Sequence record: MZ475898.1 | Length of the DNA: 64,000 nt | Reading direction: 5' to 3' (one strand) | In this document: piece after piece, positions 12,865 to 54,846 of the stretch | Numbering within the stretch: the stretch's first letter is position 1 | Layout: every line of letters starts with the position of its first letter | Program-made: the position numbers and the translations under genes | The notes under the pieces: generated by a model | Database searches by the model: none | What the model was told of the DNA's origin: nothing | The model's input: only the letters and a program-made list of their open reading frames with translations

Positions 12865-13125
12865 ATGTATCAATATGACCGCGATGAATTGAATGATCTG
12901 CCGCTTGACGTGCTGCATAGCGAAGCTGAAAAGCGTGGCTTGCTCGCTGACCTGGACGACGATGATGATTGTCCTGACCGTGCAGTGCTGGTGGGCATGA
13001 TCCTTGATGATCAGAACGAGCGCAATGCCGAAAACGAAGAGGAAGAGCAGCGCCGTCAGATGCAAGATGACGCTGACGATCACCGTCGCATGTTAGACGA
13101 ACGCGACGGCTCAGACGACTGCTAA
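12865..13125 (+). CDS. small acidic protein with a helix-extended-helix-like module
   Basis: GGAG RBS; LNDLPLDVLHSEAEKRGL...DRAVLVGMIL. Confidence 0.75.
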   Translation: MYQYDRDELNDLPLDVLHSEAEKRGLLADLDDDDDCPDRAVLVGMILDDQNERNAENEEEEQRRQMQDDADDHRRMLDERDGSDDC

Positions 13126-13126
13126 C

Positions 13127-13465
13127 ATGCTATACTCTGGGCAGCAATACGATACACTCAGTCCTGACCAGTTGAATGAGTGTTTCAATCTGATTGAAAG
13201 TTGCATGGTGGCCTCTGGCTGTCGTGGCTTTCAAATAGTGTTATCACCATCTGGTCATGGCGATTGTCGTAGCGTCGTCCACATTCAGCATCCACAGTAT
13301 GCAGGTCACATTGAGTTCCCCTCAGTTGACCGTGATACTTTTCGTGTAACACTCGTCGCAACACGCGGTTGCTATGACAGCCGCACAGTGTTCGTACCAA
13401 ATTCAGATACAGCCTATTCAGTGATAGGTCTGTATCTCTCAAACTTTATAGGGGCTACAAAATGA
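13127..13465 (+). CDS. hypothetical protein
   Basis: 112-aa ORF in operon. Confidence 0.65.
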   Translation: MLYSGQQYDTLSPDQLNECFNLIESCMVASGCRGFQIVLSPSGHGDCRSVVHIQHPQYAGHIEFPSVDRDTFRVTLVATRGCYDSRTVFVPNSDTAYSVIGLYLSNFIGATK

Positions 13466-13806
13466 AACGCCGTGTTATTCTTATTGAGCAGTCAGAGTTC
13501 ACGGGTGACCCTCTGGTGTTCCCCACCGCTTTCAATTTCACAGGCATTGACGTTGTGGTGCTTGTGACAGTGACGCATCAAGACTTTGGTGGTGTGAAGT
13601 TTCACGACACCTATCGTGTGAACGAGATGCGTGTAAGTGAACACACAGATCCCCTGCGTCAGGAGATTGAGATTGTAGAGTACAGCAAACTGCCGAACAA
13701 GGAAGAAGACTTCCAGGCGCTGCTTGCTGTCGATTACTTCGACGAAGAGATCGCAGAACGTGACCTGCGTCTGTACGATACACCAACCACAATCGTCACT
13801 GCGTAA
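13462..13806 (+). CDS. hypothetical protein
   Basis: 114-aa ORF, ATGA overlap with the previous stop. Confidence 0.75.
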   Translation: MKRRVILIEQSEFTGDPLVFPTAFNFTGIDVVVLVTVTHQDFGGVKFHDTYRVNEMRVSEHTDPLRQEIEIVEYSKLPNKEEDFQALLAVDYFDEEIAERDLRLYDTPTTIVTA

Positions 13807-13813
13807 TAACCTT

Positions 13814-13841
13814 AGGGCTGCCATCTTGGTGGCCCTTTTTT
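13814..13841 (+). terminator. Rho-independent terminator
   Basis: AGGGCTGCCA-TCT-TGGTGGCCCT followed by TTTTT. Confidence 0.75.
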
Positions 13842-13889
13842 GTTTTCTGTAAACTACACGCACAATCCCAACAATGCGAGAACGCACAG

Positions 13890-14264
13890 ATGCCAAAGCG
13901 CCGCTTTTATTTGATGTTCTTTATCAGTCAGGCAGAACTCGACGCCAAGACTTTCTATCAACACAACATGCGCATCCTGACAACGATACGCCGCACACGC
14001 TGCATCTTCCTTGTGGTCAGAGAGACTGGTGAAGTCTATGTGCCAGGCAGCGCCGTGTATCAGTCTGCAATCGAAGAAGATCTGACGCAGATGGTCTTTG
14101 ACGATCTGCACAAGGTCACCGAGTCTGTGAATGCCGTTGAGTCATTCGCTCAGGCTATCGCAGTAAACAAAAACGATAAGACAGTTCGCTACTGCGGCCG
14201 CAATCCAGAGGTGAGTGTCGTCTTCTTTGATCGCATGTTCACGAAAGTGGAGGTTCATATATGA
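13890..14264 (+). CDS. hypothetical protein
   Basis: 124-aa ORF. Confidence 0.7.
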   Translation: MPKRRFYLMFFISQAELDAKTFYQHNMRILTTIRRTRCIFLVVRETGEVYVPGSAVYQSAIEEDLTQMVFDDLHKVTESVNAVESFAQAIAVNKNDKTVRYCGRNPEVSVVFFDRMFTKVEVHI

Positions 14265-14536
14265 GTTACGATCCGCCTAAGCCAACTACGTCTCTTGGCG
14301 CTTCCCTTGCTTCACGTTGTGCGCACTCGACCCGAGAGAAAGCAAACAAGACGCGCAAGAAGTATCCCGCAACAAAGACTGTGGTCGCTACGCTGACAGC
14401 ACCTATGCACGCCGCTGTGCAACGTCTGGCCAACAAGCGCAATGTGTCTATTCAACGTTGCTTAGTCAACATGCTCGAAGCCGAGTTGGCGAAAGAGGGT
14501 ATCACTTACGCTAAAGAACAGGACGAAGACGAATGA
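14261..14536 (+). CDS. ribbon-helix-helix-like DNA-binding protein (putative)
   Basis: TVVATLTAPMHAAVQRLANKRNVSIQRCLVNMLEAEL fits the beta-alpha-alpha RHH pattern; GGAGG RBS. Confidence 0.55.
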   Translation: MSYDPPKPTTSLGASLASRCAHSTREKANKTRKKYPATKTVVATLTAPMHAAVQRLANKRNVSIQRCLVNMLEAELAKEGITYAKEQDEDE

Positions 14537-15168
14537 AACGTTTAGGTACAGTCATGGCGTTAGGTCTAAAAGACAAAGCGCCAAAGAATACTGACCTCGA
14601 CATTACGCCCGTTTCGAAAGATGCAGAATGGGGCTCTTTGAGTCCCTTTCACTTGGGGCCGTGTCGAAGCGCAGATGGTATTATGTTCCACAACTTCGAA
14701 AACCTCTGGCAGTATAGCAAGGTCTACGAAGAACATTTGGAGAACACAAACCTCATCCTCGCTGGAGAGATAAACTCTGATTGGTATCAGTGGCATCTTA
14801 AAGGTGCAAGATCAAAACAGGCGCATCGCTATCCTATGGGAAAAGGCCAGAAGGCTTTATTCTCCAGATGGGGCGACTTGCGCCTTTCGTACATTCCCGC
14901 ACGTAAACAGATCTATGTTCCAGGCTATGCCGAGCTACTTCTGCCTCAAAAGAAATTCAAACAACTCCTCAAGCAATACAAGGCCGGCGCCAACATAATC
15001 GTCCGGGACTACGACACCTACGATCTGCTGAAAGCCTATCCCAATTCTAATCGCATGTGGCTTGATGCTCTCAACAACCCAAACGCCAAGTTCGGTCACA
15101 GTTTCGTGATCGCCCTTGCTCTCATACTGCACGACAGACCTCTATGGTACAATCAATGGGTGATATAA
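14533..15168 (+). CDS. DUF6939/NADAR-like protein (putative)
   Basis: LSPFHLGP..FHNFENLWQYSKVY..YIPARKQIYVPGY..GHSFVIA. Confidence 0.5.
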   Translation: MKRLGTVMALGLKDKAPKNTDLDITPVSKDAEWGSLSPFHLGPCRSADGIMFHNFENLWQYSKVYEEHLENTNLILAGEINSDWYQWHLKGARSKQAHRYPMGKGQKALFSRWGDLRLSYIPARKQIYVPGYAELLLPQKKFKQLLKQYKAGANIIVRDYDTYDLLKAYPNSNRMWLDALNNPNAKFGHSFVIALALILHDRPLWYNQWVI

Positions 15169-15467
15169 TCTACGAATGGGTCCACGACCTTGAAGGTAAC
15201 GAAAGTCAGAATCTGCCTATCTTACCTCCAGACATTTATGCGTATGTGCGCGATGCCGTTACTGGCGCACGTACCCCAATCAACTTTGAAGGCCGCACTG
15301 AGTTGCAGCGTCAAGACAAGAAAGTCATAGGCATTGTCTACTGGTCTAATCGAGCTAATCTGATTTCATGGACGGGCGTCGAGCGCTTTCGTTTTACGCT
15401 GTATGTAGTACGCGCCGCACGTAAGTCAAATGAGCAACATGAGGAAGCTCAAGTCTGCACTAATTAG
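15156..15467 (+). CDS. hypothetical protein
   Basis: ORF overlapping the previous stop. Confidence 0.6.
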   Translation: MGDIIYEWVHDLEGNESQNLPILPPDIYAYVRDAVTGARTPINFEGRTELQRQDKKVIGIVYWSNRANLISWTGVERFRFTLYVVRAARKSNEQHEEAQVCTN

Positions 15468-15509
15468 GCTGAAATAGCTATCGCGCATAATACGCTCCTG
15501 TGCTATACT
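15457..15509 (+). promoter_or_regulatory. Box promoter P3
   Basis: GCACTAATTAGGCTGAAAT, 28 nt, then TATACT (15504) preceded by TGC. Confidence 0.7.
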
Positions 15510-15554
15510 CATAGACGAAGCAACACATAATCTATTCACGCTAAGGAGCGTACT

Positions 15555-15986
15555 ATGACTATCAACAAGTTTGACTTTCAAACACTGACTACCCCAGAAC
15601 AATGGTCTTCCGCTGCTTGGGGTTTCTATCGTGACTTCGCAGATCGTTTACGCGATGTTATCGGCCGCGATGATCTTTTCTTCGACATTGAAGTTGATGG
15701 TGGCAGCGATAGTGACCAAGTTGCCGAAGAGATGGTCGATGATGGTGTGATTCATTTACTTATCTCGTACAAAAACGAAGATGAAGATTTCATTAACGCC
15801 AAAGGCGTCTGGCTGTTCCAAGTCACTTACCCAACAGAAAGTGATATTGACGGTGAGTGGTCTAACCGCTTCGTGGTAGATGTGCAGACCGTTGATATGG
15901 AAATCTTAGAGCTGGTGGATTTTGATAACGGCCACCCACGTTTGCTTGAAGATATTGCAGCGCGGGTTAATCACTGGTTAGTGTAA
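15555..15986 (+). CDS. hypothetical acidic protein
   Basis: 143-aa ORF with hairpin SD. Confidence 0.8.
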   Translation: MTINKFDFQTLTTPEQWSSAAWGFYRDFADRLRDVIGRDDLFFDIEVDGGSDSDQVAEEMVDDGVIHLLISYKNEDEDFINAKGVWLFQVTYPTESDIDGEWSNRFVVDVQTVDMEILELVDFDNGHPRLLEDIAARVNHWLV

Positions 15987-16051
15987 TTGCTTGCGGGTCT
16001 TTTACGAAGGGCCCGTCGTCAACAACACAAACCTGTTCTAAGGAGAACAAC

Positions 16052-16369
16052 ATGTCATCATTAGTTAAACTGCAATTCATCTTTCCAGAACTGACCTCAG
16101 TTACTGTAACTGTTTCTGATTCTGACATTCCTCGCTATCTCAATATTGCAGCGGGCGCCGAAGTAACATACGAAGGCCAGACGGCGCTGGAGCGTATTAC
16201 TGACGTAAACCTGCTGCGCAATCTTCTCGTGATTGATCGTAAAATCCTAGAGATGTTGCTTGAGCGTCACAACAGCGCAAACGTTTCTAGTGAAATCGCT
16301 CACGCTGTAGACCAGATTAAGTTTGTACCTAATCGTGGCCTAAAGTTAATCGTCAATCGTTACCGCTGA
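16052..16369 (+). CDS. hypothetical protein, paralog A
   Basis: FIFPE..VTV..P.Y..I.A..E....G.TA shared with the next gene. Confidence 0.8.
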   Translation: MSSLVKLQFIFPELTSVTVTVSDSDIPRYLNIAAGAEVTYEGQTALERITDVNLLRNLLVIDRKILEMLLERHNSANVSSEIAHAVDQIKFVPNRGLKLIVNRYR

Positions 16370-16407
16370 GATTTGTGAAGGGCATTTGCGAGTGCTCTTT
16401 GAAAATC
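16362..16407 (+). repeat. Intergenic direct repeat copy 1 (with hairpin)
   Basis: ACCGCTGAGATTTGTGAAGGGCATTTGCGAGTGCTCTTTGAAAATC; near-identical copy at 16743-16790. Confidence 0.9.
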
Positions 16408-16432
16408 CTAAACCCGTTCTATGGAGAACAAC

Positions 16433-16750
16433 ATGTCATCATCTACTGAATTTCATTTCATCTTTCCAGAGTCAACCACTCTTATCGTTACTGTGGGTAA
16501 CGGCATCGTCCCTGAGTATATGGGCATCCCTGCTAATCAAGAAACCCACCTGACTGGTGAGACTGCATTCAACTTTATGCAGAACTCTAACATCGTGGGC
16601 GTTATGAATCGTTTTGATCAGTCGCTTCTCAATCTGCTTATTGATCGCCATGAGCAGAACGAAGAAGAGGAGAGTGCGTTGCGTCAAGCACACATGCAGA
16701 AGCACACAAAGAACTTCGGCGTGTATCTGCTGATCAAACATCACCGCTAA
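16433..16750 (+). CDS. hypothetical protein, paralog B
   Basis: ATG 16433 after GGAG; homologous to 16052..16369. Confidence 0.8.
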   Translation: MSSSTEFHFIFPESTTLIVTVGNGIVPEYMGIPANQETHLTGETAFNFMQNSNIVGVMNRFDQSLLNLLIDRHEQNEEEESALRQAHMQKHTKNFGVYLLIKHHR

Positions 16751-16790
16751 GATTTGTGAAGGGCATTCGTATGAGTGCTCTTTGAAAATC
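16743..16790 (+). repeat. Intergenic direct repeat copy 2
   Basis: ACCGCTAAGATTTGTGAAGGGCATTCGTATGAGTGCTCTTTGAAAATC. Confidence 0.9.
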
Positions 16791-16813
16791 AACCCTGTTC
16801 TGAGGAGAACAAT

Positions 16814-17224
16814 ATGAAACATCCACAACCTGGCTCTGTATACACCCTGCGTGAAATGCTGACTGAACTGAGTCTGCGCGACACGCCGAATCTTGGCTTC
16901 ACTCCTGTTTCTGTGCGCTATCCCGAAACGAAGGAAATCGTCCAGCAGACGGTTCAGGATTCGCATCTGACCGAAGAAGAGATGCTCGCTCTTCCTGGCT
17001 GGGCAGAAACGAAGTGGCGCTACATTCGTGAAACCCACGAGTGGATCCCTGTGTTCGTCGCTGTTGACGATGCAGAGGTTGAAGCGCTGTGTGTCATTGA
17101 ACCCAACACTGACCGCTACTTCCGTAATGAGGGTATCATGCACGTTTACCCACGTGGCGTTGAGCGCGAGCAGCATAAAGCGTATGACCCAGAAACGCAC
17201 GGCACACTGGTTAAAGTGGCCTAA
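16814..17224 (+). CDS. hypothetical protein
   Basis: ATG 16814 after hairpin SD. Confidence 0.8.
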   Translation: MKHPQPGSVYTLREMLTELSLRDTPNLGFTPVSVRYPETKEIVQQTVQDSHLTEEEMLALPGWAETKWRYIRETHEWIPVFVAVDDAEVEALCVIEPNTDRYFRNEGIMHVYPRGVEREQHKAYDPETHGTLVKVA

Positions 17225-17238
17225 GCACAAACTACCTC

Positions 17239-17262
17239 AAGCGGCTTACGGGCCGCTTTTCT
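17239..17262 (+). terminator. Rho-independent terminator
   Basis: AAGCGGC-TTACGG-GCCGCTT followed by TTCT. Confidence 0.65.
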
Positions 17263-17281
17263 TAAACATCAGGAGTCTATC

Positions 17282-19996: not shown

Positions 19997-19997
19997 A

Positions 19998-28960: not shown

Positions 28961-30169
28961 ATGGCTATCATTTCCGCAGAAGAACAAGCGCGTCTGGATT
29001 CACTTGCTGCTATCGTAGCTAAGATGTGGGCACAAGGCGGCCCTGCTGTGCGTGATGCTCTGCGCTACGTTGCTAACCAAATGCTGAGCGACGAGCATTC
29101 ATTCCTGTACGAAGAAGTGCCTGGTGTAACGCCTGACATTGAATCTGTCTACCACCATCTGGGCGATTTGCCACTGACGGGTATGACCCGCATCGTGCGC
29201 AATCCTGACTTGATCAGCTCGCTTGAAGATCTGATGAACAAAAACGAGCGTGAGATCTTCGGCTCTGCTGTGCGTAACAGCGCGTACACTATGTTCAAAC
29301 TTTTACCGCAGAATGAAACCTCGGTGTTCTGTCATCCAGGTAAAGGTGCTACCTCTCGCACCCAGCCACGTCAGGTCGCTGAAAGACTACATCGTGGTTT
29401 AAGCTACATGTTGTCCGTGCACGGTCTGGACGCGTATATCAAAAAGGCTGACAATCAAATTCGCTCTTACGGGCATACTCGCCTAGCCTCTCTGGTAATC
29501 GCAGTCGCAGTCAAAGGCGAACGCAGTGTTGCTACTCGCATCGTACCTCTGTGGCGTATGGACGATCACACGGAAGAGGTAGGCACGATTGAACTTGATC
29601 AAGATATTCCGAACGATCAGCCTGCTTACTCAACTGCGGTAGAAACCGATAGTCAGGTTTGGCAGAAGTTCGATGCAGAACACCTTATCGCTATCCTGCT
29701 CAAGCATGAAAATCATAGCGCGTCTAAGTTACGTGGCATGGACCGCGAAGAATTAGACGATACCTATGAAGCCTTCGTTGATGACTATCTTGACGACAAC
29801 CAAGATGAGGAAGAAGACGATGAGTGGGACGAAGAAGATGAAGACGAAGAAGATGCCTTCTGTCCTGAAATCCCTTCGCGTCTAGCTCTCCCTATCGAAC
29901 TGCCTATTGTTAATCTCGAACGTCAGAAGTTAGACATTCGTCCAGGCGTGCGTTTGAAGACCAAAAAGCCTAAACAGTCTCATATTCAGAATATTCTGAT
30001 TGATCCAGTTTGGCACGCAGTTGACCTACAAGACGAGAACAATATTCATTATTTCAGTGTGTCTATTGTTGCCCGTGATACTGTCGGTCATAAGGCTATT
30101 TCAGCTTCGCCGCTTGAAGCACTGACTATCTCCAACGTGCTGATGCAGATCGCTGAAACTAACACTTAA
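28961..30169 (+). CDS. hypothetical protein with acidic linker
   Basis: 402-aa ORF, GAGGA RBS. Confidence 0.85.
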   Translation: MAIISAEEQARLDSLAAIVAKMWAQGGPAVRDALRYVANQMLSDEHSFLYEEVPGVTPDIESVYHHLGDLPLTGMTRIVRNPDLISSLEDLMNKNEREIFGSAVRNSAYTMFKLLPQNETSVFCHPGKGATSRTQPRQVAERLHRGLSYMLSVHGLDAYIKKADNQIRSYGHTRLASLVIAVAVKGERSVATRIVPLWRMDDHTEEVGTIELDQDIPNDQPAYSTAVETDSQVWQKFDAEHLIAILLKHENHSASKLRGMDREELDDTYEAFVDDYLDDNQDEEEDDEWDEEDEDEEDAFCPEIPSRLALPIELPIVNLERQKLDIRPGVRLKTKKPKQSHIQNILIDPVWHAVDLQDENNIHYFSVSIVARDTVGHKAISASPLEALTISNVLMQIAETNT

Positions 30170-37522: not shown

Positions 37523-38908
37523 ATGATTTTCGATCTGCGCAAAAGTTTGGCCATGGTTCGTACCGTAATCGATGACCAAGTAATCTATAACTTCTACAAC
37601 ATGATTGGCCGCGATATGCAATTGCCCGGTACTACTCTCAAAGAGATTATCGACGTGCAGCGTAAGGGCGAACTGTCCACCTGCATCATGTGGGGTACTC
37701 AGAAGATGGAGTATCGCACACTCAGATTCGATGAGCGTGGTGATCTCCTCTTAGACGTGACCGTTGGTCCGCATTGCTACGCACGGCTTTCTTACGATCA
37801 GATTGAACACTATGGGCGCAAAGAGTTTAAGATTATTAACTGCATCGAGATTGATAGCTACCTAGCCCGTGACATTAGAGCGCATCTCCGTGCAGTAGGT
37901 CAGACTGAGCCTAAGCTCGAATGGTATGACAACATATCGGATGATGAACTAAAGGACGCGCTCCTTTCTATCGGTTACATGGGACCTCTGGCGTATGAAG
38001 GTAAATCTCGTAACCAGTTAGAGGATATGTTTGAGAAATTCCAGCGTAAGCACGATGCAGAATACAAATATACGCACGCGCATATTGGCATAGACCCAGA
38101 CGAAAAGCTGCCTGCTGATCTGTACGAAGATGAGGCCCGCTCAATCACTCGTCGTTCGTTTGCTCCTCAGAAGACTGTCGATATGATGATCACTGAGATC
38201 TCAAACGTGATGCGCATGTTCGATATCTGGGACTCAGCGCCGACCTCTGAGACGCATGAGTGGTCAATGCAAGAGGCGTACATGGCCTTCTATAACAGCT
38301 TAGTGATTGATAGCGATGGCAGCCGTCTGCGTGAACTGAAAGATAATCCACAGTTCGCTATCAACTTCATCTACGGCATGGCGGCTGACCTGAACTGGAT
38401 TCACATCAATGAAATGACCGAAGACTATCGTGGCTCGGTTGTGAATCGCATCCTGCAGGAGATTGCTGTTGAGATCAGCACCTCTGATGATTACTGCACG
38501 ACGGAGCACGGCATTGCTCTTATTCAGAAAGAAATAGAAGAGGAAGAGGAGGATGCTTCTGAGCCTGTCTCCATCGAAAAGAAAAAGAAGAAAGGCTTCC
38601 CGGATATTCGTTCAGTAGAAGAGGTGAACTATGACACACTGCATATCATCGAGACTACATACGCGATGCCCAAGCAGCCTAAGCTGCGCACTAAGCTAGA
38701 CGTACTGCAATCTCGTGAGTGCTATCTTGAGCACTTCTTCGGTTGTTTGAAAGAAAATGATTGGCATAGATTACACAATATCACTAATCTTGACCTGCGT
38801 CGTATTGTCGGTGCTGTGACAAACTCTAATGGCGGTAGATTCAGTCACAACGCCCTGTTAAACATAATTAAACGTGCAGCTAAGAAACTGGCTGCTACTG
38901 AGTTCTAA
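37523..38908 (+). CDS. hypothetical protein containing a helix-extended-helix-like module
   Basis: 461 aa; YDNISDDELKDALLSIGY..GKSRNQLEDMF. Confidence 0.85.
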   Translation: MIFDLRKSLAMVRTVIDDQVIYNFYNMIGRDMQLPGTTLKEIIDVQRKGELSTCIMWGTQKMEYRTLRFDERGDLLLDVTVGPHCYARLSYDQIEHYGRKEFKIINCIEIDSYLARDIRAHLRAVGQTEPKLEWYDNISDDELKDALLSIGYMGPLAYEGKSRNQLEDMFEKFQRKHDAEYKYTHAHIGIDPDEKLPADLYEDEARSITRRSFAPQKTVDMMITEISNVMRMFDIWDSAPTSETHEWSMQEAYMAFYNSLVIDSDGSRLRELKDNPQFAINFIYGMAADLNWIHINEMTEDYRGSVVNRILQEIAVEISTSDDYCTTEHGIALIQKEIEEEEEDASEPVSIEKKKKKGFPDIRSVEEVNYDTLHIIETTYAMPKQPKLRTKLDVLQSRECYLEHFFGCLKENDWHRLHNITNLDLRRIVGAVTNSNGGRFSHNALLNIIKRAAKKLAATEF

Positions 38909-41116: not shown

Positions 41117-41938
41117 ATGCCAGAAGCACGCAAACCTCGCCCAGCTGATCGTTTCGCTAAAGCCCGTGCAGAGAAAAACTCACCGGAGCGTCAAGATGCG
41201 GCAGCCCAGCGCACGTATAAAGACACTCCGCCTAAATCTGTTCAGGTGAAACTTGATGCTGTGGCAGCTTCTAAGAAGAAAGTTTCACGCGGCCCCAAGG
41301 CATCTCGTCCGCGTCAGTCGCCTGTTGTTGACGCAGCACCAAAGCCTCGCATTCGTGATGAGGAACGTGTGTACAATCTCGTACACATGATTCTCTCTGC
41401 GTGGAAAGCCGATGCAGAAAACGCGGCGGTAAGTGTGGGAATCATTAAAGTGTCTCGCCGTAAGATCGAGGGTGCGTTACGCGATCTCAAGAATACGCGC
41501 TTCACTAAAATCCCAGGCTTAATCAATGACGTGCTTGTCTACAATGAACTGGTAGCTGAGTTCGGACAGTGGGTGTACGTCGAGCACGACAGTCCTGATT
41601 GGATTTTTGTGCGCCTGCCTGAAAACAGCACGCCTGTGATTCGCGCTGACATTAGTTACGCCAAGACGGGTGAAACTTCCACGTCTGTTTCGACTTCTAG
41701 TGAAGTTCTGCTGAAAGATCTTAGCGAAGACGAAGAAGATGAGATCCCCGATAATGTCGAGTACGACGATGCGGACGAGACTGACGAAGACGAAGCTGAG
41801 CCGTATGACTACAGCGCTTGGTCGCTGAGTGACCTGCAGGCTTATGCAAAGCGTTATGACTTCCTGCAGCCCGACACTGAGGGGTTCGATGATCGCGAGA
41901 AGTTGATAGCAGCCATCGAGCTGGGGGAACAGCACTAA
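41117..41938 (+). CDS. hypothetical protein: basic N-terminus, acidic C-terminus with HeH-like module
   Basis: 273 aa; YSAWSLSDLQAYAKRYDF..DDREKLIAAI. Confidence 0.85.
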   Translation: MPEARKPRPADRFAKARAEKNSPERQDAAAQRTYKDTPPKSVQVKLDAVAASKKKVSRGPKASRPRQSPVVDAAPKPRIRDEERVYNLVHMILSAWKADAENAAVSVGIIKVSRRKIEGALRDLKNTRFTKIPGLINDVLVYNELVAEFGQWVYVEHDSPDWIFVRLPENSTPVIRADISYAKTGETSTSVSTSSEVLLKDLSEDEEDEIPDNVEYDDADETDEDEAEPYDYSAWSLSDLQAYAKRYDFLQPDTEGFDDREKLIAAIELGEQH

Positions 41939-42225: not shown

Positions 42226-43833
<1,608 letters not shown>

Positions 43834-43908: not shown

Positions 43909-45171
43909 ATGTCAAACGCAAATAAAACTCTGCTTAACGCTCGTGTACGTCTGTCCACTGGCACAACTACTTTCATCAACAAGATTAACGCGAACGGCTA
44001 CGGCATCGATGCTAAGGGCCCACAGATTTCTGTGAAGCGTCTTGTTATTGCAGGCAAAATGCTCAAAGAGCTGGCTGAGCCGCTGCCGCAAGGTGAATAC
44101 GTTGTGCTGAACGGCGTCACTGTGAAACTGAACAAGCGCCAGCAACGTGAGCTTGCAGAGAAAACGCTCGACACTAAAGCGCTGCTGCCTGATTTAAGCA
44201 AGCTGACCTACGTTGACCCGCAGACAGGCAAAGTCACTGATTCAAAAGTGAAGGCGCCTAAAGCTGGCGCGAAAGCAAGTCTGAAAGCAACGCGTGAGCA
44301 CAACAAAGAGCCGAAGCGTAGTCGCAAACAGCACAAAGCTGAAACGAACGATCTCAAAGACAGTCTGGACATTATCGACGAACGCAAATCACCGAAAGCG
44401 TCTCTGATTGAACGTCTGGATGCAGCAATCGCCGAAGCGAAAACGAAAGCACGCCGTAAGCTGTTAGCCGAAACGTTCGACATGGACTGGGCTGATATTA
44501 AAAAGCATGGCGGTGCAGGTATCGTTAAGCAGCATGGCCGCAAGAACGCCCAGAAGTTTATTGATCGTCAGACAGTGCAGGTCGATAGCACAACGTTCAT
44601 CAAACAAATGCCAGCGCCGCTCAAGCGTCTTATTCAGGACACTGAGTTGCGTCTCAATCAAAAGCAGATTGAGCAAGTGCTTGGTGCGCTGGGGCTTGAT
44701 ACGCAATTCTACGCAGTCGCCGTGCAAGAGCTGCTGGGCAAACTCAAACTGTCCATAGGCGGCCGCGTGATCGAAGGCGAAGTTGTTCGAAAGGAGAACA
44801 CGCCGAAGCCAAAAAGGTTCGTACACGCTGAGGCGCAATACGCAGATAAGAAAGAAGCGAAACGCCGCGTAAGCAAAATGAAATACGCGCTGCTGATTCC
44901 GCCTACGAAAGGTCTGCCTGCGTTACGCATTCATCAGGCAGAGGCAAAGCAGTCACTCGCCGTTATGCTGCACCTGAAGCCTGGGAACATCAAGCGTGGT
45001 CTGCTTGCGTATGACAACAAAGGCCGTGAGTATATGTATGTCGCTTGCGATATGACGGGCCCTGTGTTCATCGATAAAGATAGCAACGAGCTGGCGTTCA
45101 CGTATGCCAATCTGATCGATAACTTCAAACTCAAAGCGCAGCCTGTGTCTGAACTGGACGTGGCCGTATGA
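43909..45171 (+). CDS. lysine-rich multi-domain protein (basic paralog of 42226..43833)
   Basis: ATG 43909 after hairpin SD; N-terminal about 50 aa align without gaps to the previous gene. Confidence 0.88.
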   Translation: MSNANKTLLNARVRLSTGTTTFINKINANGYGIDAKGPQISVKRLVIAGKMLKELAEPLPQGEYVVLNGVTVKLNKRQQRELAEKTLDTKALLPDLSKLTYVDPQTGKVTDSKVKAPKAGAKASLKATREHNKEPKRSRKQHKAETNDLKDSLDIIDERKSPKASLIERLDAAIAEAKTKARRKLLAETFDMDWADIKKHGGAGIVKQHGRKNAQKFIDRQTVQVDSTTFIKQMPAPLKRLIQDTELRLNQKQIEQVLGALGLDTQFYAVAVQELLGKLKLSIGGRVIEGEVVRKENTPKPKRFVHAEAQYADKKEAKRRVSKMKYALLIPPTKGLPALRIHQAEAKQSLAVMLHLKPGNIKRGLLAYDNKGREYMYVACDMTGPVFIDKDSNELAFTYANLIDNFKLKAQPVSELDVAV

Positions 45172-47312: not shown

Positions 47313-50300
47313 ATGTCCGAGAACAATCAAAGCGGAGCTACTCGCTTCGGCACAGAAGTGCAGGCCGGCATCGCAGAAGCGCAACGCCGTGCTAACTCTG
47401 CTGAGAGTGGCAAGCTGAACAAATGCACGATCATCGTGCTGACTTCGATTGACGCCAACCAGCGTTACTCTTATCTGTCCGCAGACGAACAACTGCGCGA
47501 AGAACTGGTGCGTGGTAAAGTAATCAATCGTCTTCCTGATCTGTTAGAGCGTGCTGGTGGTAATACCGCTGCTGACAATAACAGCGCGTTCCACATCCTG
47601 CACCCGAACAACGGTGTGCCTACCTCGATCGATGCTCGCATCAAAGTGGGCGAAGGCAATGCGGTCATTCTGTCATATACTGTAAACAAAGCAGTGACAG
47701 AGATGCACGGTAGCTTATCGCTTGCTCTGTTTGCATCTGGCGCCGAAGACTTAAATGATCTGGCCGCTGATTTCGGTATTCACGCAATTGCGATTGTTGA
47801 AGAATCGAAAGCCGCTGAGTTCATCAAAGGACTTGAAGCTCAGGTGGAAGCGTTGAATATTGTAAATCTCACTAGCATTGATGATTCTAACGATTCGTTA
47901 GACCTGCCAGTGATTGACTTCGCTGCATTAGCGGGCAATCCTACAACAGTGCTTACGGGCGCTGTGCGTACCTTCATCATGCAATCAATCAGCGGCGAAG
48001 TCTTCGCTGCAATCCCTAATAACGGAGAACTGAACGTGAAAAACGATAACGTGGCTCAGCCTGCTGACCTGGAAGAAGACTTCGACAACAATGATGAGAT
48101 TGTTGATCAGAACGGCGGCGAAGGCGAAGTTACTGGCGAAGAGCTGCTGGGCTACAAAGCAGAAAATCTTTCGCTCGACCAAATGCGTAGTGCGCTTGAA
48201 GCGATCAACTACGACCTGTCTGAAATGACGGAAGAAGCAATCCGTGAAGCGTTCGAAACTGAACAGAACCTTTACCTGGGTGGTGGCGATGATGAATCTT
48301 CCGAAGAAGAGGAAGATGAAGACGCCGCTGATGTTGACAGCGACGACGAAGAAGAGGAAGAAGACGAGGAGTTCGATGCTCCTGCGTATCTGGCTCAAGC
48401 GCTCGCTGCTGAAAACTTTAGCCGTAGCGATCTGAAACTGCTGGTCAAGTCGCAAGACCTGAAAGTGATGAAGAACGACACTCCTGAAACTCTGGTGCAG
48501 AAGCTGCTGGATCTGGTACAGGATGCATCGTCTGATGAAGTGTTCGAACTGATCACTGTGTTCGTTGAACTGCTGGACGAGCACGGCGTTGAATGTGACG
48601 CGCTGCGTGCTACCATCGCTGAGGATGAAAGCGATGAAGACGAAGAAGAGGACGGCGAAGACGAAGACGCCGATGAAGATGGCGACGACGAAGAAGAGGA
48701 AGATGAAGAGGAGTCTGATGAAGACGAATCTGAAACCGAATCTGACGACGAACCAGCAACGCTGTTTTCTCCCTCTGACGTTACTGATCCTCTCGACTAC
48801 TTCCAGTTCGAAGGTGGTGACCTGACTCACGAACAACGCGCCGCTGCCGTACAGGCGATGGGCTCAAGCACCGCCGGTCTGAACATCGTTCAGGTCATGA
48901 AAGCGTTCAATCAAATCCGTTCGCAGTCTAACGCGATTGACATTGCCGCTGATGAAGCAGACTCTGCGCTGTACGATGTGCTGACTGCGCTGCCGTATGC
49001 AACGCTGCTGAGCTTCGCTCAAGAGATTGAGCTGGACGTTGATGGCGAAGAGTCTGCCGAAGATCTCGTCACTCTGCTGATGGACGAATCTACTGCCGAC
49101 AGCGATACGCTGAAAGCGTTGGCGTATGTGTTCGAAACCTACGGCGGCCTGGGTGTTGAAGCAGATGATATCCTGCTGATGGACTGGCATGAAGCGCTGG
49201 CGCTGGTTATTCCTGTGTATGCATCGTCAGACGAAGTTGAGTCCGATGCAGAAGAAGACGAAGACGTTATCGCTGATGAAGATTCGTCTAACGCTAACCT
49301 GAAGTTCCTGAAATCTGTTGACGTCAACAACCCTGTCGGCCCGATGCTCGAAGTTGATATGGACCGCACTCTGGTTATCAACTACACCTTCACTGACGGT
49401 AACACTTACCGCGATGTGCAAGATGAGCTGGCTGATATCGGTGGCGTTAACTACCGCTTCCCGTTCAATCTGGGCAAAGCTGGTAAAGCAAACAAGAGCA
49501 GCGCGCCTGGTAGCCTGATTGCTCCTGCTGAACATCTGATCGCAATGTTAGACCGCGCCGGTACTACTCGCTTCTTAGCTGACCCGAACACCTTCGATGT
49601 TGGTGTGTGGGCAGAATCTCTGGAGCGTATGCTGAACGCAGAAATCGCTAACAACCTGTACGCTGGTCGCATTGAAGACGGCGCTGACCCGCAGCAAGCT
49701 GGCATCGTAGTCGGTGACTTCATCGATGAAGACGAGCAAGCAGAAGTTGCTGACCTCGGCCTGCTGGATGAAGATGAGCTGGAAGCGTACACTGGTGATC
49801 ATCTGCCGATTGCAAGCCTGTACAATGCGCAAGCCCGCGTCCGTCCAGTCAACGTCGATAGCTCTTACGTTGCACTGAGCACCGTAGTGCTGAACGTTGC
49901 AGTCCCTGGCTTCTGGTGTGACTCTGATGTTGGCCGTCTGGTGCAAGCGTGTGTTAATCGCGTAATCAGCCTGGCGGAAAGCGTTGAAGGCATCAAAGTG
50001 TATGCAGGCTTCACTCTGGAATCTGCTGCGCTGCTGAACAACGGTCGCCTGTACGAAGTTGTTGGTGCGCTGCGTGAGATGGACGGTGTGCAGTCTTACT
50101 CTGCCGCTGACGCTGCTAACTTCTCAGAAGCGGAAGACATTATCGAAGTAGCGTCTTCTATCGATGATCGTGACCTGCCGTTCACTGTACTGGCAAGCGG
50201 CCTGTCTGGCGCAACGTTTGAAAACGGCGGTGACCTGACCGTGCTGGTTCCGTGCTCTGTCTTCGACGAAGAGGAAGATGAGTCCGAAGAGGACGAGTCA

Positions 50301-50318
50301 GAAGAAGACGAAGAGTAA
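47313..50318 (+). CDS. very large acidic protein with several HeH-like modules
   Basis: 1001 aa, D/E-rich tracts, hairpin SD, strong codon bias. Confidence 0.92.
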   Translation: MSENNQSGATRFGTEVQAGIAEAQRRANSAESGKLNKCTIIVLTSIDANQRYSYLSADEQLREELVRGKVINRLPDLLERAGGNTAADNNSAFHILHPNNGVPTSIDARIKVGEGNAVILSYTVNKAVTEMHGSLSLALFASGAEDLNDLAADFGIHAIAIVEESKAAEFIKGLEAQVEALNIVNLTSIDDSNDSLDLPVIDFAALAGNPTTVLTGAVRTFIMQSISGEVFAAIPNNGELNVKNDNVAQPADLEEDFDNNDEIVDQNGGEGEVTGEELLGYKAENLSLDQMRSALEAINYDLSEMTEEAIREAFETEQNLYLGGGDDESSEEEEDEDAADVDSDDEEEEEDEEFDAPAYLAQALAAENFSRSDLKLLVKSQDLKVMKNDTPETLVQKLLDLVQDASSDEVFELITVFVELLDEHGVECDALRATIAEDESDEDEEEDGEDEDADEDGDDEEEEDEEESDEDESETESDDEPATLFSPSDVTDPLDYFQFEGGDLTHEQRAAAVQAMGSSTAGLNIVQVMKAFNQIRSQSNAIDIAADEADSALYDVLTALPYATLLSFAQEIELDVDGEESAEDLVTLLMDESTADSDTLKALAYVFETYGGLGVEADDILLMDWHEALALVIPVYASSDEVESDAEEDEDVIADEDSSNANLKFLKSVDVNNPVGPMLEVDMDRTLVINYTFTDGNTYRDVQDELADIGGVNYRFPFNLGKAGKANKSSAPGSLIAPAEHLIAMLDRAGTTRFLADPNTFDVGVWAESLERMLNAEIANNLYAGRIEDGADPQQAGIVVGDFIDEDEQAEVADLGLLDEDELEAYTGDHLPIASLYNAQARVRPVNVDSSYVALSTVVLNVAVPGFWCDSDVGRLVQACVNRVISLAESVEGIKVYAGFTLESAALLNNGRLYEVVGALREMDGVQSYSAADAANFSEAEDIIEVASSIDDRDLPFTVLASGLSGATFENGGDLTVLVPCSVFDEEEDESEEDESEEDEE

Positions 50319-50325
50319 TTGACAT

Positions 50326-50343
50326 GCGGTCCTTCGGGGCCGC
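50326..50343 (+). terminator. UUCG-tetraloop hairpin
   Basis: GCGGTCCTTCGGGGCCGC followed by AATCTTTCT; identical to 3190-3207. Confidence 0.55.
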
Positions 50344-50369
50344 AATCTTTCTCAACAGGAACTGTCTAA

Positions 50370-51191
50370 ATGTCAGAACAAGTTGACCACGCAACTAACA
50401 TCATTAAGATGGTTAGTGACCGTGATGCTAAGATTAGCGAGCTGTCCGTTACGGCAAACGAGCTGCAAGGTCAGGTTAATGACTATGCAGCCGAACTCGC
50501 CGCATCTGCTGTGCGTGAAACTGCATTGCGTTTGAAGCTACGTTCTCAAGAGCGCCAGACGAATACTGATTTAGTTCGTCTGGAAACTCGCACGAAAGAG
50601 CTGGTGGATATTTCAAACACTCAGATGGCCGAAAGCAACGAGCTTAAAGCACGCGTTGAAGAAATGAACGCTAAGCTGGCGCAAGTTGACCCGATGCCGT
50701 TCGTGCTGCATCTGGTTGCTGTGCAAGCCGCATCTGTGTTCTCGTACATGGTGCAGTCGTTTGCTCATGCTCATGTTAACCAGCGCACCAACGATACCAC
50801 ACGCACACTCAGTGCTCTGATGGTAGGCGAGACAGCGCGGCGCTATCAGTCTTTCGAAAAGACCATCGCTCGCTACTGCAACTCGATTGGCGCTGAACGT
50901 CCGAAAGCAAATGATGTGCGTAACGCTTTCCCTGACTTCATGCGTAATGAAGCTGATTTATTCTGTAAAGACCCGAAGTACAGTCACGATTGCATGGCGT
51001 TAGCTGCTATGCTTAATCTGCCTCGTACATCGTGGATGTATCGAAAGTCTCTGGACGCCGTAAACCACTTCGCGTGGATTGCAGCTTTCGAAGGCAGTCC
51101 TCAAGAGTTTGAGTCAGAATCAGATTACAACGAATTATACGTTAACTCGCTTATCGATATTGCAAGCGCGTTAATCGGGCAAAACTTTTAA
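50370..51191 (+). CDS. hypothetical protein with N-terminal coiled coil
   Basis: 273 aa; heptad-like N-terminal half. Confidence 0.85.
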   Translation: MSEQVDHATNIIKMVSDRDAKISELSVTANELQGQVNDYAAELAASAVRETALRLKLRSQERQTNTDLVRLETRTKELVDISNTQMAESNELKARVEEMNAKLAQVDPMPFVLHLVAVQAASVFSYMVQSFAHAHVNQRTNDTTRTLSALMVGETARRYQSFEKTIARYCNSIGAERPKANDVRNAFPDFMRNEADLFCKDPKYSHDCMALAAMLNLPRTSWMYRKSLDAVNHFAWIAAFEGSPQEFESESDYNELYVNSLIDIASALIGQNF

Positions 51192-51236
51192 TCTGTAAAA
51201 CTTCCCTGTGATTTATTCTGTAAACACTAATTGAAG
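51190..51236 (+). promoter_or_regulatory. TCTGTAAA motif pair 1
   Basis: AATCTGTAAAA (51190) and TCTGTAAACACTAATTGAAG (51217). Confidence 0.55.
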
Positions 51237-51286
51237 TTCGCAACGGGCAAAAGCCCAAATCGAAAAATTAACGGAGTTCCACTACA

Positions 51287-51856
51287 ATGGCAAAAGCTAC
51301 TAAGTCAACTAACCTGGTTCCTACCCTGGTTTCTCGCATCGCTAAAAAGTCTGGCTCTATCGGTACTTCGAAAGCAAAAGCAACTGACCTGCCGCATGAC
51401 ATTCTGATCGAATCTCAGCACGTTGTCGAAATCATCGGTTATATCACTGACCGTTCTGCGAACCACGTTACTCTGCGTCACAAAAAAGGCCACGGTTCTT
51501 CTTCTCAGATCGTTTCAACCTTCGGCCCGGGTCAACTGCTGACCGTTCTGGGTGAAGCTGGTTCACACGGTTCTGTGCGTGCGCTGATTACTGCTCCGGT
51601 CTGCGAACTGAAAGGCTTCACCATTAAGTATGACGGCGATACCATCATCGCTACTTCTATCGAAACTGGCGAAGTGATTCACGTTAACACCCAGCTGGCC
51701 GGTCACACCGTTCGCGCTACTGTGAACGAAACTGCCGCCGCTAAGAAATACGGCACGCCTGCTCCAGGCAAAGGCAAGAAAGATGCTAAGCCTGCTAAAG
51801 CAGACAAAGCAGCGAAAGGCGGTAAGAAAAAGAAAGGTAGCGACGAAGACTTTTAA
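51287..51856 (+). CDS. highly expressed hypothetical protein with beta-rich core and basic tail
   Basis: 189 aa; tail KADKAAKGGKKKKGSDEDF; strong codon bias. Confidence 0.88.
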   Translation: MAKATKSTNLVPTLVSRIAKKSGSIGTSKAKATDLPHDILIESQHVVEIIGYITDRSANHVTLRHKKGHGSSSQIVSTFGPGQLLTVLGEAGSHGSVRALITAPVCELKGFTIKYDGDTIIATSIETGEVIHVNTQLAGHTVRATVNETAAAKKYGTPAPGKGKKDAKPAKADKAAKGGKKKKGSDEDF

Positions 51857-51869
51857 TCGCTGATCTGAA

Positions 51870-51949
51870 AATCTGTAAAAACTGATTATGCAGAGCAACA
51901 AAAATAAAGTTGCTCTGCCGTTAAACGAATCTGTAAACATTAATTGAAG
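51870..51949 (+). promoter_or_regulatory. TCTGTAAA motif pair 2 flanking a hairpin
   Basis: AATCTGTAAAA (51870), GCAGAGCAAC/GTTGCTCTGC hairpin, TCTGTAAACATTAATTGAAG (51930). Confidence 0.55.
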
Positions 51950-51985
51950 CAAGTCGCTTCTCATCCCATACAGGAAATAAAAACC

Positions 51986-52786
51986 ATGGCTAAATCTGCT
52001 AAAGTAACCGTAACCGTCGCACAGAAAGTTCTGGCTCAGATGCTGGGTGTTGTTGTAGCGAACGCAAGCGAGAAAGAACTCGTTGCGATTCTGTCTGACC
52101 TGGGCCTGACTGTTGCTGCGAAAGGTAAAGGTGCTAAAGCTGAGAAAGCTGCGAAGGGCGGCAAGAAAGCTAAAGCCGCTACCGTTGCTCAGATCGTTAA
52201 GGCCGTTGAAGAAGAGGAAGCTATCTCCCTCGACGGCGTGAGTGAAGATGACCTGCGTGCAGCGGTCGTCAAAGCTAAGCTGGCTAAGGCCAACAAAGCT
52301 AAAGCGCTGGACGAAGAGGAGTTGACTGAACTCCTGACCGACGCAATGGGTGCCGAGTCTGATGAAGACGAGGAAGAGGACGAAGAAGAAGAGGACGAGG
52401 ACGAAGACGAGGACGAAGACGACTCGGACGACGAAGACGAAGATGAAGACGACGAGGACTCAGATGATGAAGATGAGGACGAAGACGACGAAGATTCGGA
52501 CGACGAAGACGAGGACGAAGATGATGAGGAGGAAGACGAAGACGAGGATGAAGATGAGGACGAAGATGAAGATCTCGACCTCGACGGCCTCGACGAAGAC
52601 GAACTCCGCGCCCTCGTGATCGATAACAAGCTGGCCACTAAGGCCAAAGCTAAAAAGATGGACGAAGACGAACTTCGTGAACTGTGTGAATCCCACTTCG
52701 GCGGCGACGATGAAGACGAAGACGAAGATGAGGACGAAGACGATGAAGACTTCGACGATGAAGACGAAGACGAAGACGACGAATAA
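51986..52786 (+). CDS. poly-acidic protein with two HeH-like modules
   Basis: 266 aa; ATG 51986 after AGGA; about 70-residue D/E/S tract including DSDDEDEDEDDE x3. Confidence 0.9.
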   Translation: MAKSAKVTVTVAQKVLAQMLGVVVANASEKELVAILSDLGLTVAAKGKGAKAEKAAKGGKKAKAATVAQIVKAVEEEEAISLDGVSEDDLRAAVVKAKLAKANKAKALDEEELTELLTDAMGAESDEDEEEDEEEEDEDEDEDEDDSDDEDEDEDDEDSDDEDEDEDDEDSDDEDEDEDDEEEDEDEDEDEDEDEDLDLDGLDEDELRALVIDNKLATKAKAKKMDEDELRELCESHFGGDDEDEDEDEDEDDEDFDDEDEDEDDE

Positions 52787-52999
52787 GTCCTGATCTGCCG
52801 CTGCCCTGCAAGACTGATGAGTGTCTGCGCAGGGCAAGAAATATTCGAAAAATAGTTCGAATTATTTCGCAAAAAGTTTGAAAAATTCCTGTCGTTGTTT
52901 ATTGCACATAGTAATATTCGACTACAGGAATTAAACCTGAAAAATTTTACTTTTATCCAACGCGACGAGTCGCACACAATAAATTCACGGAGCATTACG

Positions 53000-53512
53000 A
53001 TGACTAAGAAAATCATTTCTGGCCTGAACAAAAACCTGAAAGCTATCGCTAAATCAGAAGCTGCCCTGGCCAAAACTGTTGTTGCTACCAACAAAGAGAT
53101 CGAAAACCTGGGTTCACAGCGTGCTGGTATCGAAGCGCAGATCGCTGAACTGTCTGGTGTTGCTGCTCCTGCCAAAGCTGATAAAAAAGCTAAAGGCGCG
53201 AAAGCAGAAAAAGCGGCCAAGCCTGCTAAAGCTGAAAAAGCAGCTAAAGCCGGTAAGAAAGAAAAAGCTGCTAAAGCTGAAAAGCCAGCCAAAGCTGATA
53301 AAAAAGCGAAAGGCGCCAAAGCTGAAAAAGCTGCTAAGCCTGCTAAAGCTGAAAAAGCTGGCAAGAAAGAAAAAGCTGCTACCAAGCCTGCTAAAGCTGA
53401 TAAAAAAGCTAAAGGCGCCAAGGCCGACAAAGCTGCTAAAGGCGGTAAAGCTGACAAAGCCGGTAAGAAAAAGAAAGCGCAGTCTGATGACTTCGAATTC
53501 GAAATGGAATAA
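53000..53512 (+). CDS. histone H1-like Lys/Ala-rich protein with N-terminal coiled coil
   Basis: 170 aa; ATG 53000 after GGAG; PAKADKKAKGAKA(E/D)KAAK x3; acidic tip SDDFEFEME. Confidence 0.85.
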   Translation: MTKKIISGLNKNLKAIAKSEAALAKTVVATNKEIENLGSQRAGIEAQIAELSGVAAPAKADKKAKGAKAEKAAKPAKAEKAAKAGKKEKAAKAEKPAKADKKAKGAKAEKAAKPAKAEKAGKKEKAATKPAKADKKAKGAKADKAAKGGKADKAGKKKKAQSDDFEFEME

Positions 53513-53609
53513 GCAAGCGGTCGCATAGCGCGATAACTTGATCGAGAGGGCAGCGCTGACGGGCGTTTGCCCTCTTGTCGTATCTATCTCATTTTCGAGG
53601 CTCTTTAAA

Positions 53610-54095
53610 ATGTCCAAACAAGAAGTATTCAACAGGCTTGATGATCTTCACTCCAAAGAACGTGAGCGCAGCAAACAAGCCAAGCAAGGCCCCTCCTATT
53701 TCGAACTGACGAACCTGCGTATTGAAGCAGCCGCTCGTCTAGCTCGTGCCCTCCAAACTCTCAAAGCCGCAAACGTTGTTGGTGACGTTGAAGGTATCTC
53801 TCTGCAGGAAGATGCGCTTGAAGTCGCTCAAGCCTACTGGACTGCTATCTTAGATGGCTTAACCCCTGTAGCAGTTGATGGCTCGCCTATGCGCAAGCTG
53901 CTTGCTGGTATGCCTGCATGTATCGAAGCGTTCCGTGTTGTAGTAATGGAAAGCGCTATGCGTGAACATCTGGTCGTTCAATGCAATGCGATTGCAGATG
54001 ACATTAAGGGTTTCCCGCAACTGACTGGGCATGTTCTGCCTACTATTCAACACACCTGCGAAGAGGGATGCAACTGTGGCTCAATCACTGAGTGA
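53610..54095 (+). CDS. hypothetical protein
   Basis: ATG 53610 after GAGG; C-terminal HTCEEGCNCG. Confidence 0.75.
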   Translation: MSKQEVFNRLDDLHSKERERSKQAKQGPSYFELTNLRIEAAARLARALQTLKAANVVGDVEGISLQEDALEVAQAYWTAILDGLTPVAVDGSPMRKLLAGMPACIEAFRVVVMESAMREHLVVQCNAIADDIKGFPQLTGHVLPTIQHTCEEGCNCGSITE

Positions 54096-54846
54096 AAAGA
54101 TTAACCGTTACTTCAATCTGATGGAGGACATCCGTGCTGAGATGTTCCGCGTGATTGATGTATCTGACCGTTACTTCGGTATTGTTAGTTTCAACACTAA
54201 CATGCAGGCACTGCAAACCACACTGGTGAGCAAGTCCACCCTGATGGAAGTTAAGCTGCTTGAGGGTATCAAAGGAGCGGAGCTGATTGCGTTTGGCAAT
54301 ATGGTTCACACTGTAGAGCAATGGGTTGCTGGTGGCATGAAGGGCGCTTTCCCTATCGAGCAGACCAAAGACGTGTATGCCAAATATCGCGCTGCTACCT
54401 CAGATGGGCCACAGGCACAGAACGAACCTGAGCCTGCTAATGTACCTCAGACTGATGCAGATGTGTTAGATCCCCAAGAGCTGGACAATATCAAAGTTCA
54501 ACTTCTGTCCTTCGATGACTCTGAACTGATCGACCATGCTGCTCAGTTTAAACTCGGCACTCGTACACGCCTGCGTTGCATGGGCCGTGACGATCTGCTG
54601 GACATGCTGTTTGACCATCATGGTATCTATGCAGAAAACGACCAGCGCCGCAATGAAAGTGTCGCAGACTGGTTAGAGCGCATACCTCTTGATGATGCGC
54701 TCCGTGAAGTCGACCGCATAGATGATAGCAGTGTACTTGATCACGTTGCGGACGATATGAGCGTTATGTCGGGCGTTAATGACGCTGTGACGCGAGCGCG
54801 TATAAAGCAGTCGCTGAAAGAGCTACACACTAAGCCTGCGCAGTAA
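54076..54846 (+). CDS. hypothetical protein with HeH-like module(s)
   Basis: GTG 54076 after GAGGG; LLSFDDSELIDHAAQFKL..MGRDDLLDML. Confidence 0.75.
   Translation: MAQSLSEKINRYFNLMEDIRAEMFRVIDVSDRYFGIVSFNTNMQALQTTLVSKSTLMEVKLLEGIKGAELIAFGNMVHTVEQWVAGGMKGAFPIEQTKDVYAKYRAATSDGPQAQNEPEPANVPQTDADVLDPQELDNIKVQLLSFDDSELIDHAAQFKLGTRTRLRCMGRDDLLDMLFDHHGIYAENDQRRNESVADWLERIPLDDALREVDRIDDSSVLDHVADDMSVMSGVNDAVTRARIKQSLKELHTKPAQ

Follow-up and report, generated by a model that had tools for sequence, protein, structure and literature searches.

The DNA analysed here (the window) comprises the last 64 kb of the genome of pEa_SNUABM_25, an Erwinia jumbo phage of the fire-blight bacterium (MZ475898.1, 263,017 bp). 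Window positions equal record positions minus 199,017, and genes are named by the locus-tag numbers of MZ475898.1, in which every coding sequence (CDS) carries the annotation 'hypothetical protein'. The subject is a small helix-extended-helix (HeH) module, which a first-pass annotation of the window had proposed to recur in at least seven proteins, all encoded on the plus strand: g258 (12865-13125), g312 (37523-38908), g318 (41117-41938), g319 (42226-43833), g324 (47313-50318), g327 (51986-52786) and g330 (54076-54846). All seven genes are annotated CDSs, and the peptides quoted for them were all found in the genes concerned, as written. As judged by profile comparison, g312, g319, g327 and g330 carry five copies of one family of mini-domains of 40-45 residues, referred to below as core modules. 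The four carriers are neighbours in an early/middle block directly upstream of the type II topoisomerase genes (54987-57014 and 57749-59410), which lie downstream of g330, and the gene order from g319 to g330 is kept in the phages Alexandra, Y3, Yoloswag, pEa_SNUABM_5, Dickeya JA29 and Yersinia fHe-Yen9-02.

Profile-against-profile comparisons by hhalign drew on orthologous modules, first those of six relatives and later those of the IMG/VR copies of 15 relatives, with reversed alignments as controls; the best control E-value was 2.6e-3 and the best control probability 11.5%. Five modules, located in g312, at the C-terminal end of g319 (g319C), twice in g327 (g327a and g327b) and in g330, were linked with probabilities of 88-99% and E-values of 3e-6 to 4e-16, with g319C, g327a and g327b matching one another without gaps at 98-99% (E-values of 1e-12 to 4e-16). 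A 36-sequence alignment of the five positional types is essentially gapless over 45 columns. Pairwise phmmer searches of the six-frame translated genome detected only the pair g327a-g327b (4e-7) and, weakly, g319-g327b (0.016), and g330 joined the family once its orthologues were added to the profile. When the family profile was run against the whole 263-kb genome, only the five core modules were found, the next match (7 bits) being noise, and a hidden Markov model (HMM) built from the core modules only gave no additional member in the genome. Scores against the family profile (alignment A9) were 46-66 bits for the five modules of the window, which had themselves been part of its seed; independent support is given by the hhalign matches obtained between separate ortholog sets and by the 42 clusters found among 1.84 billion.

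The proposed membership of seven proteins was too broad. They do not form one significant profile, and hhalign links only four of them: leave-one-family-out HMMER recovered no left-out family above the shuffled noise of ~8 bits, the hhalign results for g318, g324 and g258 were at control level, and a mixed HMM of all modules was too diluted to recover anything. A loose helix-loop-helix pattern gave 6 matches in 5 proteins among the 339 open reading frames of the whole genome, all of them at 37.5-54.8 kb of the window, as compared with 0.22 on average, and never more than 2, in 200 shuffles; the pattern was written post hoc, after the data had been seen, and thus indicates clustering, not homology. 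The underlying observation is real and non-random, yet narrower than claimed: it comes down to a single family, of which four proteins carry five copies, together with several unrelated HeH-like modules and one false member, the segment R2 of g324.

The core module of g319 (43708-43830; like all features located below, on the plus strand unless stated otherwise) forms the extreme C-terminus of the protein and is preceded by a poly-D/E tract together with a D-F-x-F motif. It is conserved in 6/6 relatives examined, matches g327a and g327b at hhalign probabilities of 98-99% and gives sub-threshold Pfam matches to SAP (19 bits, E-value 1e-3) and LEM (E-value 0.03). Copy a of g327 (52220-52354; predicted helices at residues 87-96, 102-107 and 110-120, with a predicted local distance difference test score (pLDDT) of about 90 in AlphaFold2) is kept in all relatives and matches copy b at 98.4%. 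Copy b (52571-52705; helices 204-213, 219-224 and 227-238, pLDDT 91-94) lies between two poly-D/E tracts. The module of g330 (54490-54627) is situated within a variable C-terminal extension and, taken together with 8 orthologous modules, matches g327b at 95.4% (E-value 1.8e-8) and g319C at 94.5%, with reversed controls at E-values ≥ 0.1; the orthologues in AD1, SNUABM_1, _3, _17 and _33 have plainly g327b-like sequence at the module position. The segment of g312 (37916-38056), which is internal and has no adjoining acidic tract, is a probable core-family module, matching g319C without gaps at 88.6% (E-value 2.6e-6) and kept in 8 orthologues. The reported proximity to acidic linkers holds for the segments of g319, g327, g324, g318 and g258 and weakly for that of g330, but not for that of g312. 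After its core module, g330 has a second, degenerate helix-loop-helix-like segment at the C-terminus (54682-54843); the corresponding segments of Alexandra- and AD1-like phages show better conservation, with the pattern L-(S/T)-K-x-E-L ... M-x-S-L-(I/V)-K-G.

In alignment A9, the modules share 45 ungapped columns with conserved L9, R10, L18, T-K-K-x-A-K-K, D28, L32 and L35-36. Among 131 non-identical modules, L9 is present in 91% and L32 in 90%, and the hydrophobic core is formed by L9, positions 12-14, L18, A24, L/M27, L32 and L35-36. The other conserved columns hold helix-capping acidic residues and a single basic patch, composed of R10 and the T-K-K-x-A-K-K segment between the helices; outside this patch, the module is otherwise acidic.

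AlphaFold2 was run for g327 on a 16-sequence alignment and returned two compact units with pLDDT values of about 90-94, separated by acidic tracts with values <50. According to this model, the core module folds by itself into a helix, a Lys-rich turn or short helix, and a second helix. With g327b as the query, VIA-align was run exhaustively over 48,161 solved chains. Among the top 50 neighbours, at least 16 were SAP, LEM or Rho N-terminal domains (Z 3-4.8), including the SAP structures 2do1, 1zrj, 2do5, 1h1j, 1v66 and Ku70 1jjr, the LEM structures 7ndy (LEM-BAF complex, emerin; root-mean-square deviation 1.9 over 39 residues), 2odc, 1h9e and 1h9f, and residues 1-47 of Rho (1a62, Z 4.1). SAP-type regions of FAN1, SLX4, MANF and CDNF were also present among the top 50. 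The weak Pfam matches all fall within one clan, with LEM detected in 4/21 and SAP in 2/21 core modules (E-value <1) and Ish1 for the g318 tail. Together, the g327 model, the VIA neighbours and the sub-threshold Pfam matches support the assignment of the core family to the SAP/LEM/HeH clan fold, predicted as an independent unit of ~35-45 residues with a helix, an extended or basic linker and a helix. The SAP/HeH/LEM/Rho-N-like fold suggested beforehand is thus borne out for the core family, but no Pfam threshold was reached.

The remaining segments are probably separate HeH-like modules of other sequence types; these comprise the g318 tail, R1, R3 and R4 of g324 and perhaps the g258 segment. 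The C-terminal module of g318 (41801-41935), which follows an acidic stretch, scores 25.2 bits against Pfam Ish1 (E-value 2.1e-5, profile positions 1-33 of 37), a near miss of the cut-off of 26.6, and Ish1 matches were obtained in 3/5 g318 orthologues. It showed no hhalign link to the core family above control level and is, by its sequence, a different, Ish1-like HeH module and not a core copy.

For g324, residues 270-660 were folded by AlphaFold2 on a 22-sequence alignment, with a pLDDT of about 90 for each unit. Helix-loop-helix units were predicted for R1 (48150-48284; helix, 9-residue loop, helix), R3 (48804-48938; helix, 9-residue loop, long helix) and R4 (48981-49115; helix, 10-residue loop, helix, then further helices), but R2 proved to be part of a larger bundle. 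R1 is homologous to R3 (hhalign 96%, E-value 5e-9) and to no other module; R2 and R4 showed no hhalign link above control to any other module. R3 and the g327 modules have the VIA neighbours 8fn4_2 and 9sob_C16 in common, and the R4 region matches FAN1 residues 464-533 (VIA Z 4.6). R2 (48399-48533) forms helices 2-3 of a predicted five-helix domain (48366-48650, residues about 352-446; pLDDT 90-95), and its status as a free-standing HeH module was ruled out, as it is integral to this bundle. Nearly all of the VIA top 50 for the five-helix domain are death-fold structures (PYD, DED, DD, CARD), with Z of 5-6.7, a range common for helical bundles, and the sequence does not support this likeness. 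Death domains are six-helix antiparallel bundles, and the g324 domain has five predicted helices. The resemblance may serve as a lead only; such a domain in a jumbo phage would be unusual.

The g258 segment (12880-13014) displays an HeH-like pattern only. Within the protein, conservation among relatives falls on this segment (68-70% identity), for which there was no hhalign link to any module, no Pfam match and no usable ESM Atlas match. At the N-terminus of g327, a conserved, putative two-helix segment (52019-52123; helices 11-19 and 29-38, pLDDT 62-66) gave hhalign links at control level. An extra candidate, absent from the first-pass annotation, lies in g297 (CDS 28961-30169) just before a poly-D/E tract (29672-29785); this helix-loop-helix-like segment was a recurrent weak match to the mixed profile, with up to 13.5 bits, and was not significant against the core profile.

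Comparison of related phages indicates that the core module behaves as a mobile cassette, which is found either at the end of a protein or flanked by disordered poly-D/E linkers, varies in copy number and is gained, lost or exchanged for a different HeH type at one and the same position. The module-bearing extension of g330 occurs in the SNUABM_25 group, Y3 and AD1-like phages; Alexandra has a different one, and Yoloswag, SNUABM_5, Yen9-02 and JA29 have none. The tail of g318 is Ish1-like in SNUABM_25, SNUABM_7, Yoloswag and JA29 and missing in SNUABM_5, and at the same position Alexandra-like phages have a true core-type module (hhalign 93.3% to g319C). Three b-type copies occur in the g327 homologue P0016, and the g312 homologue P0126 and the g319 homologue P0113 each have a second copy after an acidic tract. 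Locus searches with g319 or g312 as single proteins returned only near-identical phages, and alignment queries were needed for the others. In the IMG/VR copy of pEa_SNUABM_17 (L032:10135-10617), a g318 orthologue has an acidic tract at its end, and the Ish1-like module of the g318 family is encoded downstream of it in a reading frame of its own; this arrangement could be due to a split gene, a frameshift or an error in sequencing.

Run against 1.84 billion cluster representatives, the family profile matched 42 proteins at E-values ≤ 1e-3. Full-length modules are present in 36 of the 42 proteins, 55 modules in total, with two to four copies in 17 proteins; 26 of the 55 modules have a 30-residue flank consisting to at least 50% of D/E, and 19 are located at the extreme C-terminus. 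Several carriers are DUF669 proteins, and in other phages the core modules are arrayed in tandem along the charged tails of DUF669-type single-strand DNA-binding proteins (SSBs). The gene of one DUF669 protein, P0114, adjoins genes for AAA_24 (Sak4-like), PDDEXK nuclease and DNA polymerase A proteins, and the N-terminal domain of P0114 matches DUF669 clusters in the ESM Atlas (TM-score 0.76-0.79). For a second one, P0148, the module is present in the tail of 56/121 homologues, and these tails are composed of alternating acidic and basic blocks. An Atlas cluster of 442 viral proteins is labelled 'DUF669/Rho termination factor N-terminal domain-containing protein'; Pfam assigns SAP to 34% of its members and Rho_N to 31%. 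Pfam searches of ten DUF669 proteins with the module detected only DUF669 and no SAP or Rho_N bridge. Because Pfam misses the core family both in the window and in these ten proteins, the family constitutes a branch of its own within the clan, one not covered by current libraries. The DUF669 protein Gp63 has been found by experiment to be an SSB with an oligonucleotide/oligosaccharide-binding (OB) fold and an acidic, flexible C-terminal region, which works with a Sak4-like ATPase (PMC13687109, 2026). The recurrence of the module on the tails of phage DUF669 SSBs points to a role in DNA metabolism, a context that does not by itself show the binding target of the module. A resemblance of P0111 to T4 gp32 was confirmed by neither Pfam nor PHROGs and was dropped.

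Among known systems, the SAP domain (PF02037; Ku70, PIAS1, THO1, SAF-A/Hcc-1) resembles the core module in its size of 35-45 residues, its two amphipathic helices and its conserved basic loop; it also provides the best sub-threshold Pfam match (19-20.5 bits) and structures among the nearest solved ones. SAP domains often adjoin acidic or disordered regions in chromatin proteins and bind DNA (scaffold/matrix attachment regions or duplex) via the loop and the start of helix 2. The core module differs from them in its longer inter-helix segment (~10 residues, T-K-K-x-A-K-K) with a predicted short third helix and in its strongly acidic helices; its Pfam match stays below the gathering score, with only helix 1 aligned, and its DNA contact is putative. 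Rho_N (PF07498) and HeH/LEM (PF12949, PF03020) domains are represented among the structural neighbours (1a62, 7ndy, 2odc, LAP2 1h9e/1h9f), and phage DUF669 SSBs with Pfam SAP or Rho_N tails, as in the 442-member Atlas cluster, have the same architecture as those with core modules, whereas the respective Pfam models miss the core family in the window and in the ten DUF669 carriers. The Ish1 repeat (PF10281) is comparable to the g318 tail only: both have the W-(S/T)-L..L..(F/Y) ... D-R..LI motif, but the g318 match is sub-threshold and concerns a single copy at the C-terminus of a phage protein, as opposed to a eukaryotic nuclear-envelope repeat protein. As in the acidic tails of SSBs (the tip of bacterial SSB, T4 gp32, T7 gp2.5 and DUF669 Gp63), a disordered acidic tail on a DNA-metabolism protein would act as an interaction platform; the core family, however, embeds folded mini-domains in the tail, whereas SSBs have a short linear tip motif. 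Moreover, the carriers in pEa_SNUABM_25 are not SSBs, whereas its SSB, g244, has a charged tail without the module. The result is a solid annotation and not a new mechanism, namely a new sequence family of a known module type. It gives a starting point for work on a block of large, strongly charged proteins conserved across Erwinia, Dickeya and Yersinia jumbo phages, and it defines a phage-specific SAP-like family that is missed by domain libraries and situated on the tails of many phage SSBs.

The best overall explanation is that one SAP-like cassette family, present in four proteins, probably acts as a tether at phage DNA or at the replication/recombination machinery. By analogy to SAP domains and given the SSB-tail context, the module would hold its carrier at phage DNA or at DNA-bound replication/recombination proteins. 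The likely contact surface would be the conserved basic patch of R10 and T-K-K-x-A-K-K, which may touch nucleic acid as in SAP domains, with the acidic linkers serving as spacers or competitors. Such a DNA or replisome tether, if true, would explain how accessory proteins are recruited to replicating phage genomes and would provide a small, portable tag for experiments. Several points weigh against this interpretation. The net charge of the module is about -3 to -7, with polyanionic tracts on the flanks, which argues against simple non-specific DNA binding. At 3-4.8, the VIA Z values are low in themselves, which is to be expected with ~45 residues, and the weight of the VIA result lies in the enrichment of one rare fold class, not in these values. 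No Pfam clan member reached its gathering score on the modules: for SAP (PF02037, 23.9 bits), the best scores were 19.0 (g319) and 20.5 (P0131), with only helix 1 aligned, and for Rho_N (PF07498, threshold 24.9 bits), the modules in the window gave no match and the relative P0117 gave 14.1 bits. No significant match was obtained when alignments A1, A2, A3 and A9 were searched as profiles against PDB sequences, and a Foldseek search of the PDB with the g327 model gave no match. Finally, the AlphaFold2 models of core modules are those of g327 only, and the fold of the g312, g319 and g330 modules is assigned by homology to them.

Because of the net negative charge and the polyanionic flanks, a protein-docking role comparable to that of LEM in LEM-BAF stays a serious, if rather unlikely, rival to the tether. 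The module would then be a protein-protein docking tag, which binds one common partner, as LEM binds BAF, and gathers g312, g319, g327 and g330 on a single scaffold, with the histone-H1-like protein g328, the SSB g244 or the topoisomerase as candidates. This would fit the position of all carriers in one gene block, the net acidic module with its single conserved basic patch, its presence on SSB tails, which are classical protein-recruitment hubs, and the clan itself, in which protein binding is known for LEM and for some SAP-like domains (the LEM-BAF structure 7ndy being among the VIA neighbours). However, the same family is found in many unrelated phages without this block, so that any partner would need to be widely conserved, as would be the case for DNA or a core replication protein. 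It is improbable that all seven proteins carry the same tag, with weak members too diverged for sequence methods. All segments do fit a helix, a loop of 9-12 residues and a helix and can be plausibly aligned by eye, R1, R3 and R4 of g324 are predicted helix-loop-helix units, the g318 tail matches Ish1 of the same Pfam clan, and relatives hold a true core module at the g318 position. Nonetheless, the leave-one-family-out profile fails for every family, hhalign leaves g318 type I, g324 R1-R4 and g258 at control level, g324 R2 is integral to a five-helix bundle, and the alternation of core-type and Ish1-type modules at the g318 position looks like cassette replacement rather than divergence.

A purely compositional origin, with amphipathic D/E/K/L-rich helices beside low-complexity tracts and no discrete domain, is very improbable and already disfavoured. 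Composition is extremely skewed in these proteins, the matches of PHROG and Pfam to the acidic tracts are plainly compositional, and many word-search matches of g327 are acid-tract matches; yet hydrophobic positions (L9 91%, L32 90%, L18, L35/36) and the specific positions R10, D28 and A24 are kept in register over the 131 non-identical modules, reversed and shuffled controls were negative, and AlphaFold2 yields a compact fold with pLDDT >90, as opposed to <50 for the acidic tracts. In a speculative extension of the tether, to which only a small chance is given, the modules and the poly-acidic and poly-basic disordered regions of g319, g324, g327, g328 and g244 would form a multivalent network round the replicating phage DNA, resembling a chromatin- or condensate-like compartment. 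The module would serve as the address tag that admits proteins to it and might do the same job on the DUF669 SSB tails of many smaller phages.

Several further features were noted in and around the gene block. The N-terminal domains of g319 (42226-42440) and g320 (43909-44100) appear related, since phmmer with g319 detected the JA29 orthologue of g320 (E-value 1.9e-5), and g319 further contains a domain duplicated internally and an H1-like stretch rich in Lys, Ala and Pro. g328 (53000-53512) encodes a Lys/Ala-rich, histone-H1-like repeat protein with 49 K/R in 170 residues, whose acidic C-terminal tip, (D/E)(D/E)-F-(D/E)-F, is kept in 6/6 relatives. The D-F-x-F motif of this tip recurs just upstream of the g319 module (43650-43710) and is conserved there, too, and the C-terminus of g326 (51840-51856) reads S-D-E-D-F here and S-D-E-N-F in JA29. 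The D-F-x-F-type motif of g328, g319 and g326 may be a candidate short docking motif like the tip of an SSB tail. g244 (record positions 198388-199638, with window positions 1-621 representing its end) matches the PHROG 'single strand DNA binding protein' (E-value 1.5e-151); its tail of alternating poly-D/E and poly-K/S blocks bears a close likeness to the DUF669 SSB tails found elsewhere and is devoid of a SAP-like module. Three proteins of the structural region, encoded on the minus strand outside the window (record positions 106217-106621, 108599-110689 and 118001-119947), likewise have long poly-D/E tracts without a SAP-like module, and one of them shows repeated D-F-D-S-E-S units.

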